Shown here piece after piece: positions 6,081-45,589 of a stretch of DNA of 64,000 nucleotides; position 1 is the stretch's first letter; each line of letters opens with the position of its first letter. The notes under the pieces are model-generated. The model was given only the letters and a program-made list of their open reading frames with translations. It had not been told where the DNA came from and did not search any database. This DNA is from Tetramitus jugosus. Its lineage: Eukaryota; Protista; Heterolobosea. The stretch covers positions 434,001-498,000 of the forward strand of contig OW569348.1 in the NCBI GenBank assembly GCA_937625935.1, written 5' to 3'. The translations under genes were made by a program, and so were the position numbers.

Positions 6081-6151
6081 TCGGTCATGGTATAGGGGTA
6101 GCATTCCAGACTGTCACTCTGGCGACCCGGGTTCGATTCCCGGTGATCGAG
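6081..6151 (+). tRNA. tRNA-Asp (anticodon GTC)
   Basis: Acceptor stem TCGGTCA/TGATCGA, anticodon arm CCAGA-CTGTCAC-TCTGG, T arm CCGG-GTTCGATTC-CCGG (B box), and T runs just downstream as a Pol III terminator. Confidence 0.95.
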
Positions 6152-6313
6152 AACTTTTGTGTTTTTGTTTTAGTCGGAAATTCATTACTCCGAAACCTCA
6201 AGAAATAATGAAATTTTAGTTCACACAAACAAACCGAAAAACACGCACAACCACACCAAGATCTCTCCGTTGCCAAAATAGACATCAAACTTAAATACCC
6301 TCACATATAAATA

Positions 6314-7836
6314 ATGGCCAAGAGTATGTCTTTTTGCTTTTCACAGTTTCCGAAACACAACAACAACCATCACTTTGAATACTACATATAATGATGAAAG
6401 CTCAACGCACACCGAATACACCCAGCACTCCTAGTAGTAGCAGGGCCAAATCACCCATGACCCGTTCTCACTCTTCTCATTCTCTCTCCTCTAAAGGATC
6501 TAGTAGCAGTGGAAAGAAGCAAAAGCTCAACAGAAGTCCATCCTTTAACCACCCGGACGACGTATCCGACAGTGCAAGTGACTCTCACTCGATTGCATCC
6601 ACTGGTGACTTTCATGATGATGATTTGAATGAACAGGAAAAAACTTGGCAAGATTTATTGCTCGAATCAATTGATGACCTCACAGAAAAGAGAGGAAAAG
6701 GAGCAAGGAGAACCACTGCCCTCCACACCATCAATTCTCTGCTGACCAAACATTATTGCTATGAAGCATTGAGTAATTATATTGACACGGCCACGAGAAA
6801 CATTTTTGGTTGCGTGTTAAAGTCAGCGAGCGATGAAGAAAGTGTGGAAAGCTTGAGAGCGCTGTGTCTGTTAGCGCTCACGTTTGGCACGACAGGAGTT
6901 GATGATGAAATGACGGAGAAAATCATTAGAGAATCACTTGAAATTGCACAGCAGTACAACAATAAGACCAATGAACAATTGTTGGTGTCTCCAAAGGTGA
7001 GACGCAAGGCACTCTTTACCTATACACTGTGGAGTTTGATTGACAAGACACCAGAGGAATTTGTTCCGTTGAAGAATGTAAACAAGAAGGCAGCCGAAGC
7101 ATCTGTCGAACAAACGCCCGCTCTCGAAGCCCTTCAAAGCTTTTGGCCTCGAGTGCCCGATGCAGACTACAAGGGAGATCAGGATTTGTTGGCCGACAGT
7201 ATTACATGTTGGTCTCTCTTGTGCACAGTCGTGCCTGGCCACTTGTTGGACAAGTATGTCGTAGCCAATGCGAAAATTACTCTGATGAAACTGGTGATCA
7301 ACGATCACAGTCAATTCCAAGTCAAGAGAGCTGCTGCCGAGGCCATGTGTCTCTTGGTTGAAAACACAAGCTTTAGCTCTGAAACGAGCACTCTGTTTGA
7401 TGATGCATCGGATGAGATTCGACGTTTGAGCACACAAACAGACAGAACAACAAGCAAGAAGGAGAAATCATCACAAAAGTCTCAATTCCGTGACTTTTTG
7501 TTCACTATTGAAGACGGAGAGTCACCTCAGCTACCATTGACCATCAATGGAGTAACATTGAACTTTGAAAGCTGGACAAGAATCATTCAGTTCAATTTCT
7601 TCAAGTCAGTGCTCAAGGCCGGTATCAACACCCACTTTACTTACAATGATTTCGTGAGGGAGGTGTTTGACATATCGAGAATTAACTTTGCATCTGACGA
7701 GGCAAGACAGGGAGCATTGTCACCCTCAGAGAAGAAGTTCTACATGGGCAAGGGATCTGCCTACCAAAGAGAAGACACAAAGCAAAAGAACAAGCTGACA
7801 AGACAATTTGCTCAATATCTCTCAGTTGATGAATAA
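6314..7836 (+). CDS. Interferon-related developmental regulator (IFRD) family protein; exons 6314-6323 and 6401-7836
   Basis: Ser-rich N-terminus, IDDLTEKRGK..RTTAL, and the C-terminal SKKEK..QKSQFRDFL..IE / F.SW motifs typical of IFRD. The GTATGT...AG intron restores the frame (MAKTQRTP). Confidence 0.75.
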
Positions 7837-42100: not shown

Positions 42101-43111
42101 TCATGTACACTTTTGGTCCATTTTGATGATGCGAGAAGCATGCTGCGATTGCCAAAATTGCTCACCAACAAAGTCATCGTGCAACTGAATGATGCCATGT
42201 TGCTTATCGACCACTTGTCTTTCTGATGACTCCTCTGATGGTACTGTTGATTGATCACTTGTTAACACTTTGTCCGATCGTATCAGTATTGTTCCCCTGC
42301 GATCTATGGCAGGATCCTTGGCAATATTGATACCAAACGTGTTGAACAATAGTTCATTACGATCAGAGAAAGTGGTACCACTCAACACATTCTGTGCTTC
42401 AGTGAGTGTCTTTCCCTGTTTCTGTACCAAATTCCAGAAGCAAGTATTATAAACGTGATTCACAAAGGCATCGTCCTGTCTCCACCGAAAATAATCCTTC
42501 ATCGATTGCAACGTAGGAAACGCAATGCACCTCGAGTCAAACGCCGGTGCATACTGCAATGTCTTCTGACCACTGAACGCATCACTCCAATGCATGACAA
42601 AATTCGAAGCCACCAACGAAGCAAACAACGAATTGAGCTTACTCGTTCGTCTACTAAACAAATTTGTGTCTCGCGCGAGTAAAAAATTAATCTCATCGCT
42701 CTGACCGTACGACATGAGCACTTCAGGGAACGATTTCATCACGTGCAATGCACAAGTGTTCATGAGATGAATTGCCCTGTGATCCATGGGTTTCTCATAC
42801 TGATTCACACGAGTAAACTGTGAAAATTTTTTACCGTCGACACGCAGAACAATCCACACGTTGGGCATGAGCGTATCATTGTGTAGCATCTCATAGCGCT
42901 TTACGTAGGCCCAACGCGAACTTCTTTGAACTTGATCCTTGTTGTTGTTGTTACTACTATCATTCTCATGATGATAATCTGATGACATGCATCTGCTCTT
43001 ATTCTCATCAATTGAGTACTTTCTTTGCAAGCAACATGTTGTGAGTGGAATCGATGAGAATTGGTTACTCGTTCGATGATGTGACACTCGCTTTGATACG
43101 CGCAACAACAT
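42101..43111 (-). CDS. THG1: tRNA-His guanylyltransferase / Thg1-family 3'-5' polymerase with presequence-like N-terminus
   Basis: YVKRYE, WIVLRVDGKKF, YGQSDE, FSRRTSK, PAFDSR, YFRWRQDD, NELLF..FGIN. Confidence 0.92.
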   Translation of the reverse strand: MLLRVSKRVSHHRTSNQFSSIPLTTCCLQRKYSIDENKSRCMSSDYHHENDSSNNNNKDQVQRSSRWAYVKRYEMLHNDTLMPNVWIVLRVDGKKFSQFTRVNQYEKPMDHRAIHLMNTCALHVMKSFPEVLMSYGQSDEINFLLARDTNLFSRRTSKLNSLFASLVASNFVMHWSDAFSGQKTLQYAPAFDSRCIAFPTLQSMKDYFRWRQDDAFVNHVYNTCFWNLVQKQGKTLTEAQNVLSGTTFSDRNELLFNTFGINIAKDPAIDRRGTILIRSDKVLTSDQSTVPSEESSERQVVDKQHGIIQLHDDFVGEQFWQSQHASRIIKMDQKCT

Positions 43112-43168
43112 TTATTTGATTGGATTGTTTTTTGTGTGAATGGAAAGTTCCTTTTTGAACGCATCATG

Positions 43169-43244
43169 TCTGTTTTATTGGTACGGCAAAGGATCAGAAT
43201 TCCAGTGGCTTAATGCCCTATGAGGTCTTCACGTTGGATTGGTG
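43169..43244 (-). repeat. Inverted, internally deleted copy of module B (copy C)
   Basis: Five perfect reverse-complement blocks (15, 9, 10, 14 and 12 nt), collinear with 44046-43927. Confidence 0.88.
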
Positions 43245-43370
43245 TCTGGTGGAACTTAATTTTTTGAAAAAGAAGGAACATTCATCCCACATTGAAACCA
43301 TTCCTGTTAGAGTAAACCAAGAAGATAAATGAGCAGCAAGAATGACTATCCCTTCTTCTCAAACAACCAA

Positions 43371-43489
43371 AGCACCAATTTACTGATTATTACTTCGTAA
43401 CTGCCTCACAGTTCAGAGTCACAAAGTGGCTCGTGGGATTACGCTCTATTCCGAGTTGTGATCCCATTTTCTTTCCAAACAACAGAAGT
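43371..43489 (+). repeat. Structured module copy A
   Basis: AGCACCAAT..CCTCACAGTTCA, GAGTCAC-AAA-GTGGCTC, G, TGGGATTAC-GCTC-TATTCC-GAGT-T-GTGATCCCA, TTTTCTTTCCAA..AACAGAAGT; homologous to 43925-44049. Confidence 0.85.
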
Positions 43490-43924
43490 TAGAAATCATT
43501 TGAAACATGTCAGATTGACTTTGAATGTTTAATGAGAAGCAGTTCTTATCTCTCGTTCTTTAGAACATTTCAAAGGTGAAAAGGGCACCTGGTTCCTTGA
43601 AAGCACTTCTTGATCATGTTTCTTCTTGAGGTATTTGAGCTGGCCATCGTGTTTTATTTTGTTGTTAACTGGTTGTTATTACTTAAGGATGTTTTTCTTG
43701 TTGTGAATGAACTTGGCCGACATAACTATTTCATTAAGTAATAACACTAAGTAACACAAAGAAATTCCTCTGCCTAAGTTCCTCGATCTGCACCAAATGG
43801 AAATGAAAAATTATGAACTTTTTTTAGTGTTGAAAGTGTCAGAGGAACCACATTGATCTGGTCGTCACGGTCAGACTTCTTTTGCGTTTTAATCTGCAAG
43901 CGATGGAGGTACCAATAGGGTTTG

Positions 43925-44049
43925 AGCACCAATCCAACTCAGATAACACACCAGTTTGAAGACCTCATAGTGCACGGTGGCAAAGCCACTGGTGGATCAG
44001 AGCTCTATTCCGAGTTTCTGATCCATTTTCTTACCAATAAAACAGAAGT
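43925..44049 (+). repeat. Structured module copy B
   Basis: AGCACCAAT..CCTCATAGTGCA, CGGTGGC-AAA-GCCACTG, G, TGGATCAGA-GCTC-TATTCC-GAGT-T-TCTGATCCA, TTTTCTTACCAA..AACAGAAGT. Confidence 0.85.
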
Positions 44050-44494
44050 ATGATAAATGTTGCAATGGTGTGCTACCACACTGCCAAATTCTTTTGTATG
44101 TAGCTTGAAAACAGCGACAAATTCTGATTCATGTTGACACAACATTTTTATGTGAAGGGAGGTCATTCAATTTGCATTGGAACGCGAGTAGTTAAAAGCC
44201 TACATTACTGAGGGTTCTCGAGTAGTCTCCTATCTCAATACTAACTCAGCCAGATGGTGCTTAACTTCTCTATTCGAAATGGGAAGAGGTGGTTCCACCA
44301 TTGTATGAACGTAGACATTCATGATGTTTCCTCAGTATTTTTGGCGCCGACGGCTACAAAATTGAATGAGCGTTGTTGGTTGGGTCAGAGGTTCGTGCAT
44401 GGCAGGTACAGAGCAGACGGTTCCTGCTTGAGTGGAAACGAAATGGGTCAACAAATCATGTCTGTCAGTTGCTGAGTATGTGTGAACCTCAAGT

Positions 44495-45589
44495 TTATTT
44501 CTTTTGTTGCAATTGTTCCTTGTCGTGAGCATGAGGATAAGGCTCCAATAAATATTTTCCAAACTCGTCGAGTGCCTTCACACCTCTCACTTCTTCACCC
44601 AACAATGGCATCTGAATGATATGGAAGTCTTCATACAAGTCAAACACTTGACTCAAATACTTCTTTTGAATCTTGATTCTCGAGTCACAAATCTTACACT
44701 TGGAGCACGAGTCTTCTTGATCCTTGAGCACCAATTGATTCACCACAATATTGTGAGTATCAATCTCAAACTTTGTCAACTCTTGAACCAATCTCTCAGT
44801 CTCATACACGGACAAGAACTCTGGTATGCACACGCACACAAATGTAGTTTTTGTTGGATCCTTGAACTGATTGGAAATGGTTTCAATGAGCTCTCGTGAC
44901 GACTTCAACTTGTTTTGAATGTCGTCTGCATTGGGGCCACCTGATGCACCACCACCCATCATGGATGTGACCTGGGACAACATGTTGCCGACACCTTGGA
45001 ATTGCATCAACTTGCCCACTGAATTTTCCAAGACAGATGGGAATGAGAGCAATCTCAGAGTGTGACCAGTAGGTGCCGTATCGAACACTACACATGAAAA
45101 CTTCATGCTCTTGACCATTTTCATAATTTCCATGAAACTTGAAATTTCGTCCATTCCGGGCAATGATGTCGAAACTTCCTTCATCAAGTTCTTCATGAGA
45201 CCACCACCACCACTACCACCATCACCACCACCCATATCACCTACAATATCACCCAAAAACTCTTCTGGTTCAAGTGTTGGATCAATTTCCATACCATACA
45301 AATTGTCATATCCGGCCACCTTGGTTGGTTCTTTGCCAAATTTTTGAGAAAAGGCATCACTGAGATTGTGAGCAGGATCAGTGGAGATGATGAGAACAGA
45401 TTCTCTCTTTTTTGCAAGTTGGATGGCAATGCAGGATGATGTGGTCGTTTTACCGACACCTCCCTTTCCACCAACGAAAATCCATTGAAGAGAGTCTTGA
45501 TCAATCAAATTTTGAATAGTTGGATCCAATTGTTCCAATGCTTCCAAATCATCGAGTTCATCGAGGTCAAAATCGTCTAGTCCTGCCAT
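44495..45589 (-). CDS. GET3: Get3/TRC40/ASNA1 ATPase
   Basis: [54 protein letters not shown] and a CxxC motif. Confidence 0.97.

Follow-up and report, generated by a model that had tools for sequence, protein, structure and literature searches.

Two structured modules between the Thg1-family and GET3 genes of Tetramitus jugosus are probably genes of a family of small snRNA-type RNAs

In the 64-kb stretch of Tetramitus jugosus DNA analyzed here (64,000 nt, referred to below as the window), two similar modules of about 120 nt, A and B, are found on the plus strand between two minus-strand genes, one of the Thg1 family (ORF 42101-43111) and one encoding GET3/ArsA (ORF 44495-45589). The original prediction described the modules as copies of one unit under selection for RNA structure, serving as a protein-binding domain, a guide, or something ribozyme-like, and saw in their spacing of about 555 nt a resemblance to retrozymes. 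This raises the question of what the modules are: repeated parts of a single long RNA, units of a self-cleaving element, or genes in their own right, and, if they are genes, what kind of RNA they would encode and how it would be made.

In each module, a conserved 12-mer is followed by two hairpins with one unpaired G between them. The parts are as follows.

43404-43415 (+): conserved 12-mer of module A, CCTCACAGTTCA, single-stranded
43416-43432 (+): hairpin 1 of module A, 7 bp closed by an AAA loop
43433 (+): unpaired G of module A
43434-43466 (+): hairpin 2 of module A, 33 nt, with 9 bp, a bulged U, 4 bp, and a UAUUCC loop
43963-43974 (+): 12-mer of module B
43975-43991 (+): hairpin 1 of module B, 7 bp and AAA loop as in A
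43992 (+): unpaired G of module B
43993-44025 (+): hairpin 2 of module B, 33 nt, built as in A

The common architecture claimed for A and B was found where it had been placed, and chance is excluded by the covariance-model E-values of the module copies (1e-25 and below; the next-best match within the window had E = 0.015). The stems had also been said to diverge in sequence while keeping their pairs. This is true of A compared with B, where pairing is intact at all positions if G-U pairs are allowed. In hairpin 1, both sides are altered in three pairs, and in hairpin 2 there is a six-position difference, part of which is a compensated one-pair shift and not six independent changes. On the plus strand, the modules fold far better than shuffled sequences (z = -4.0 for A and -4.15 for B, equaled by 0 of 200 shuffles), and on the minus strand the corresponding values are -0.2 and -1.2.

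A covariance model built from the A and B cores was run on the window's own assembly (26.35 Mb in 56 contigs) and returned 44 strong copies, scoring 62 to 113 bits, together with two degenerate ones. A second model, built from all 44 copies, recovered the identical set. With both models, scores drop from 62 bits at the lower edge of the family to 39 bits and lower for anything else. The copies are spread over at least 24 contigs and occur singly, in pairs, or in triplets, and this number and spread of strong copies rules out a local duplication. Significant covariation among homologues, on which the original prediction had made its case depend, was observed across the 41 distinct paralogue sequences. 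In these, 97.7% of cells are standard-paired, in an alignment fitted to the covariance model, which favors structure. Changes on both sides were found in 9 of 20 pairs, and the observed covariation was reached by none of 500 column shuffles. As a control, pairing partners were slid by one to three columns, and pairing fell to 31-40%. Helix 1 is 99.6% paired across the family, with two-sided changes in three pairs, and helix 2 is 96.6% paired, with two-sided changes in six; the changes at pairs 14-30 (GC, AU, CG, and GU) and 39-57 (GC in 24, AU in 15) are independent events. Taken with the number of paralogues, the retained pairs, the two-sided changes, and the shuffles bear out the proposed selection on structure. 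The likeliest role for the two hairpins would be that of a protein-binding scaffold.

How such modules might be expressed can be read from their flanks. The alignment of all copies with their flanking sequence contains three signals. An upstream element, (C/A)CCA(C/T)A and often with ...ATTGA, lies at -122 to -95 from the start of the core in 37 of the 44 copies. About 38-40 nt past it, a TATA-like element falls in one alignment column in all family types. Behind the modules, a 3' box, A(C/T)AGAA and usually AACAACAGAAG, is found 13-20 nt past hairpin 2 in every one of the 44 copies. Around 37 of the 44 paralogues have an intact promoter; seven or more copies, which have no upstream element or have suffered deletions, are likely pseudogenes.

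The same signals are found at the spliceosomal RNA genes of this genome, which were located with Rfam models (two U6, four U2, one U5, one U4, and two U1 genes). U6, U2, and U4 score above the Rfam cut-off, while U1 (62 bits against 69.5) and U5 (38.8 against 40) fall just below it. The upstream hexamer of the family lies at -77 to -85 of U1a, U2a-d, U4, and U5, with a GCCACA variant at U1b, and at -69/-68 of both U6 genes. A TATA-like box stands 37-38 nt past this element in U1a and U6a, the two genes in which the distance was measured, and the other snRNA genes likewise have such a box. Behind U1, U2, U4, and U5 there is an A-rich stretch with an AGAAG box; U6 ends in a T run instead. The sequence just past the 3' end of U4, CAAACAACAGAAGT, is identical to the box behind family members, and the boxes of U1, U2, and U5 are variants of the A-rich and AGAAG form. 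In U1, U2, U4, and U5, the RNA starts about 10 nt further from the upstream element and the TATA-like box than it does in U6. Since the same three signals flank U1, U2, U4, and U5, the motif AACAGAAGT is a 3'-end signal that lies outside the RNA. We infer that RNA polymerase II transcribes the family genes as snRNA-type units and that the 3' box sets the end of the RNA just past hairpin 2. The combination of upstream element and TATA-like box at the proper distance is confined, in the window, to three places, which are A, B, and one more. The third, at 6250 (+), is just past a tRNA-Asp gene (6081-6151) and ahead of an ORF at 6391, and it may be a further snRNA-type gene or a chance occurrence.

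The 5' ends of the RNAs were set at PSE + 80, a distance calibrated on U1, U2, U4, and U5, and are predictions, as are the 3' ends. For A, this gives 43365 +/- 3, and for B, 43925-43927. The resulting gene features are listed here.

43285-43295 (+): PSE-like upstream element of gene A, TCCCACATTGA, its hexamer starting 118 nt ahead of the core
43324-43330 (+): TATA-like box of gene A, GATAAAT, 39 nt past the PSE
43365-43470 (+): predicted RNA of gene A, about 105 nt, 5' end +/- 3 nt, 3' end in the U run
43365-43403 (+): 5' part of gene A (type A), largely unpaired; contains the motif CCAAAGC and a tract rich in U
43477-43489 (+): 3' box of gene A, AAACAACAGAAGT, the putative 3'-end formation signal, outside the mature RNA
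43846-43856 (+): PSE-like element of gene B, AACCACATTGA
43887-43893 (+): TATA-like box of gene B, TTTTAAT
43925-44029 (+): predicted RNA of gene B, about 105 nt (PSE + 80 = 43927 +/- 3)
43925-43962 (+): 5' part of gene B (type B)
44026-44029 (+): U tail of gene B
44036-44049 (+): 3' box of gene B, AATAAAACAGAAGT

The eight B copies provide a check on this placement. They are nearly constant from about 43924 to the U run, with three positions varying in one or two copies, and their promoter spacers differ far more than the transcribed part. Conservation of B therefore starts at the predicted PSE + 80 start, so that the functional unit coincides with the one expected from the promoter spacing. 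Within the 5' part, all eight are identical over a stretch of 30 nt.

Across the family, the predicted RNAs are about 85-105 nt long and consist of a 5' part of 19-40 nt, the 12-mer, the two hairpins, and a short U tail. The RNAs predicted for genes A and B fold at z = -4.0 and -3.6, respectively, with the 5' part mostly unpaired. The 12-mer, with the family consensus C-Y-U-C-A-Y-W-G-U-N-C-A, is almost invariant. Among the 5' parts, no fewer than six types can be told apart by sequence, namely A (which has a subtype), B, C, D, E, and F. Every type has a CCAA(G) motif near its 5' end and, just ahead of the 12-mer, a U-rich tract followed by purines. This tract fits an Sm site (A-U4-6-G-R) well only in one or two types (L021/L036-like copies). 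The four flanking motifs reported as conserved are all common to A and B, but they do not all extend to the family or belong to the folded unit. General to the family are the 12-mer, the U run, and AACAGAAG. Only the CCAA core of AGCACCAAT recurs; the motif itself lies at the predicted 5' end in B and just inside it in A. Two others are outside the fold, one being the 3' box named above and the other, TTTTCTTWCCAA, being the U tail plus spacer.

An unpaired 5' part raises the possibility of a partner RNA. Complementarity to SSU, 5.8S, and LSU rRNA, the rDNA spacers, 5S, and the snRNAs was at chance level (blastn-short and RNAduplex), and the longest complementary runs to SSU, LSU + 5.8S, 5S, and the snRNAs were no longer than those of shuffles. 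Three apparent relationships to rRNA were rejected. A pairing of 44006-44047 with 18S rRNA was equaled in quality by 41 of 200 shuffles. An 8-9-nt identity with 5S helix II, AAGCACCA(U), suggested a mimic or derivative of 5S, but local alignment of the entire RNAs with 5S had z <= 1. Three short sense matches in LSU 2376-2400, which might have indicated a mimic of this segment, are expected from the number of 7-9-mers. The rDNA itself, located through its 5.8S gene, is on contig C53 (SSU of 2117 nt, 5.8S, LSU of 3749 nt); the orientation of its units alternates with a period of about 42 kb, which suggests a palindromic or inverted-repeat rDNA element. When the 5' part of B was searched genome-wide for antisense targets (30-nt pattern, up to 3 mismatches), only the eight B genes were returned.

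One partner search stood out. The 5' end of type C can form a 12-bp, two-part duplex with nucleotides 21-37 of U2b/c at -16.1 kcal/mol, a value reached by 0 of 300 shuffles, while U2 pairing by the 5' types A, B, D, E, and F was at chance level. In U2, the complementary segment takes part in helix I with U6 and lies next to the branch-site sequence. We regard this predicted complementarity as a weak lead only. It belongs to a larger idea, in which the members of the family would make up a novel type of modular nuclear RNP, with a constant two-hairpin handle that carries exchangeable 5' parts, each engaging a different cellular RNA. The handle would then be bound by a dedicated protein or by an Sm/LSm ring, and some family members, as in the type C-U2 case, would be regulators or chaperones of spliceosomal snRNA. 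At present, we consider this larger idea rather unlikely.

With the family, its flanking signals, and its predicted RNAs in view, we conclude that A and B are probably two distinct genes, each transcribed on its own, from an undescribed family whose roughly 44 members would encode small, structured RNAs of the snRNA type. They are not major snRNAs in disguise, as U1, U2, U4, U5, and U6 were each found separately in the genome, and neither module matched any of 4227 Rfam models, among them those for snRNAs, SL RNAs, SmY, U7, Y, vault, 7SK, and ribozymes, at E <= 10 when 43280-44120 was searched with permissive filters. Other explanations have to be weighed against this one. The closest would have the genes transcribed by RNA polymerase III as U6-class units; the T run right behind hairpin 2 would then act as terminator, and La or LSm proteins would bind the oligo-U tail of the RNA. 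A TTTT does follow hairpin 2 directly in 35 of the 44 copies, and the genome's own U6 genes have the same upstream element and TATA-like box. However, nine copies have only TTTC or TTAT at this position, and the 3' box, present in 44 of 44 copies, is otherwise found behind U1, U2, U4, and U5 but not behind U6. In addition, full conservation of the B copies starts at PSE + 80, as expected for a Pol II-type gene, and not at PSE + 69. Consequently, transcription by polymerase III appears doubtful to us. It is much less probable still that the copies are a swarm of repeats, SINE-like or segmentally duplicated, with no function of their own. In favor of a swarm, block duplication has carried the A-B gene pair to at least five loci, several loci received the pair along with the spacer block (43582-43705) and often with a 5S gene, and at least seven copies are without a promoter or have deletions. 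A swarm of this kind would not account for the maintenance of both helices by compensatory changes, for promoter elements whose spacing is constant despite divergence of the intervening sequence, or for a transcribed part that is much better conserved than its flanks. Poly(A) tails beside the copies were not seen.

The host also brings spliced-leader (SL) RNA genes to mind, in which case the 5' part would be a mini-exon that is trans-spliced onto mRNAs. T. jugosus is a discobid and thus related to Euglenozoa, where a mini-exon is trans-spliced to mRNAs, and in several lineages SL RNA genes are characteristically multi-copy, about 100 nt long, and linked to 5S, with an snRNA-type promoter and a U-rich, Sm-like tract. 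The family has all of these attributes, its 5S linkage being frequent. Yet there is no shared mini-exon, as the at least six 5' types of 19-40 nt are unlike one another, and neither the position nor the context of a GU donor is conserved, with type F having no GU ahead of the 12-mer. SL RNA identity therefore fails on its defining feature. Among the RNA-library loose ends listed, there was no branching at the putative donor, and the SL families of Rfam were unmatched. We hold this identity to be very improbable. Even less credible are two functions in line with the original prediction, namely snoRNA-like guides for rRNA modification or processing and self-cleaving retrozyme units. A variable 5' part on a constant handle does look guide-like, but C/D and H/ACA boxes were not seen, the hairpins are near-perfect and lack a pseudouridylation pocket, the complementary runs to SSU, LSU + 5.8S, and 5S are at the level of shuffles, short matches to the rDNA spacers do not exceed chance, and the proposed 18S pairing is the one so often matched by shuffles. 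Retrozymes are suggested by the arrangement of units in tandem. Here, however, each unit has its own promoter and 3' box, and the 555-nt spacing goes back to the joint duplication of the A-B pair, the spacer block, and sometimes a 5S gene to several loci. The original prediction had itself stated that no known ribozyme core fits, and this held in the Rfam search, which found no ribozyme family for either module at E <= 10; the comparison with retrozymes has to be given up.

Returning to the interpretation of A and B as snRNA-type genes, the surroundings add a further association with small RNA genes. Two neighboring features lie on the minus strand.

43166-43250 (-): degenerate B-type copy, a weak model match with internal deletions that retains only the flanking motifs
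44197-44316 (-): 5S rRNA gene (Rfam RF00001, 100.4 bits), convergent with gene B

The first is probably a pseudogene because it has internal deletions and no upstream element; the layout around it is also duplicated on contig C44. The 5S gene begins 148 nt beyond the 3' box of gene B, on the opposite strand. With Rfam at gathering scores, this 5S gene and one tRNA gene are the only hits in the whole window. In the genome, 5S genes are dispersed (at least 47 scored), and one is present in 22 of the 44 3-kb loci centered on family copies, some of which overlap. At about half of the copies, 5S and family genes thus lie within 1.5 kb of each other in what may be called small-RNA gene islands. The 1.3-kb gap between THG1 and GET3, which had appeared densely structured, is explained by such a cluster of small RNA genes and not by one long RNA.

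Several other elements of the gap were observed. A block at 43582-43705 is conserved, at 72-93% identity, between family genes in at least nine loci. It has invariant sub-blocks, including TTGGTTCCT and TTTGAGCTGGCCAT, and its minus strand opens with the PSE-like ACACAATGG. A leftover of the duplication, now decaying, or an independent element would fit. A long inverted repeat with a terminal 12-bp stem occupies 43673-43747 (+) and gives a weak SNORD70-like match (E = 1.1), and clear C and D boxes were not found in it. Just past the 3' box of gene B, positions 44046-44114 are 85-93% conserved in six other loci and occur in soil RNA-library contigs.

Whether the family is expressed can be approached through environmental data. 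In four RNA libraries there are contigs that include the two modules and 5S but none of the unique spacers. Three of these libraries are soil metatranscriptomes from separate studies; for the fourth run, an RNA origin is a guess. The contigs continue into the promoter and downstream flanks of paralogous copies, and they could represent DNA carry-over or read-through. They fit the presence, and possibly the expression, of the family in soil strains related to the host, and expression of the family is suggested by these sequence matches. Near-identical DNA was also found in groundwater, soil, and freshwater metagenomes, and the metagenome scan returned two contigs with family copies, both near-identical. 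None was found in a prokaryote genome collection. The GET3 protein is 68% identical to that of Acrasis kona, 62% to that of Willaertia, and 58-59% to those of Naegleria, and this one protein points to a free-living heterolobosean amoeba as host. On GET3-bearing contigs of relatives, family members were absent.

If A and B are genes of the proposed snRNA-type family, a stable nuclear RNP would form on the handle, perhaps together with the U-rich tract, and contacts with a partner RNA or protein would be made by the 12-mer and the unpaired 5' part. To our knowledge, hardly any class of small nuclear RNA outside the spliceosomal set has been described in Heterolobosea. The family is a closed set of 44 genes, and its clear promoter grammar and strong compensatory change, along with the lack of an Rfam match, make it a clearly delimited new candidate RNP for isolation. 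For this lineage, the signals that mark snRNA promoters and 3' boxes are now also available and can be used to find more small RNA genes that have escaped annotation.

Among known systems, the nearest are the U1, U2, U4, and U5 genes of the same genome. They have the upstream element at about -80, the TATA-like box about 38 nt further on, and the 3' box past the terminal hairpin, and their RNAs are of similar size. However, the family matches no snRNA family in sequence or structure, has 44 copies compared with one to four, and is without a clear canonical Sm site. In layout, the family RNAs are like U7 snRNA, the product of a Pol II snRNA-type gene, in which an unpaired 5' part and a U-rich tract precede a 3' hairpin domain. 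U7 is about 60 nt long, with a single hairpin and few gene copies, whereas the family RNAs are about 100 nt, with two hairpins and 44 copies, and the Rfam U7 model was unmatched. SL RNA genes and the nematode SmY RNAs are multi-copy, about 100 nt long, driven by an snRNA-type promoter, and linked to 5S, and the family resembles them in each of these respects. It differs in having no common mini-exon or conserved splice donor, and neither the SL nor the SmY models of Rfam were matched.

A further parallel comes from dictyostelids, as the 12-mer of the family bears what we take to be a loose resemblance to the 11-nt motif of their Class I RNAs. The Class I RNAs are a dictyostelid-restricted family with tens of small RNA genes (PMC7919456). 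They are about 60 nt long, with one short stem joining the 5' and 3' ends, an AAG start, and a CUGU end, and a conserved short single-stranded motif lies beside the 5' stem (positions T3, C6, C9, A10, and A11) (PMC7919456). Their genes have a CCCA-rich upstream element at a fixed distance, and their stems are kept by compensatory change (PMC7919456). The family shares with them the tens of genes, the fixed-distance upstream element, the short single-stranded motif, and the compensated stems. In contrast, its RNAs are about 100 nt long, with two internal hairpins, no terminal stem, and other end sequences, and its host is a discobid and not an amoebozoan. Identity with Class I RNAs was rejected, as the length, terminal stem, and end sequences that define them are different here. 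The nearest named relative of the host is Acrasis, an aggregative amoeba. Consequently, the parallel between this family and the Class I RNAs of dictyostelids could be a convergent one.
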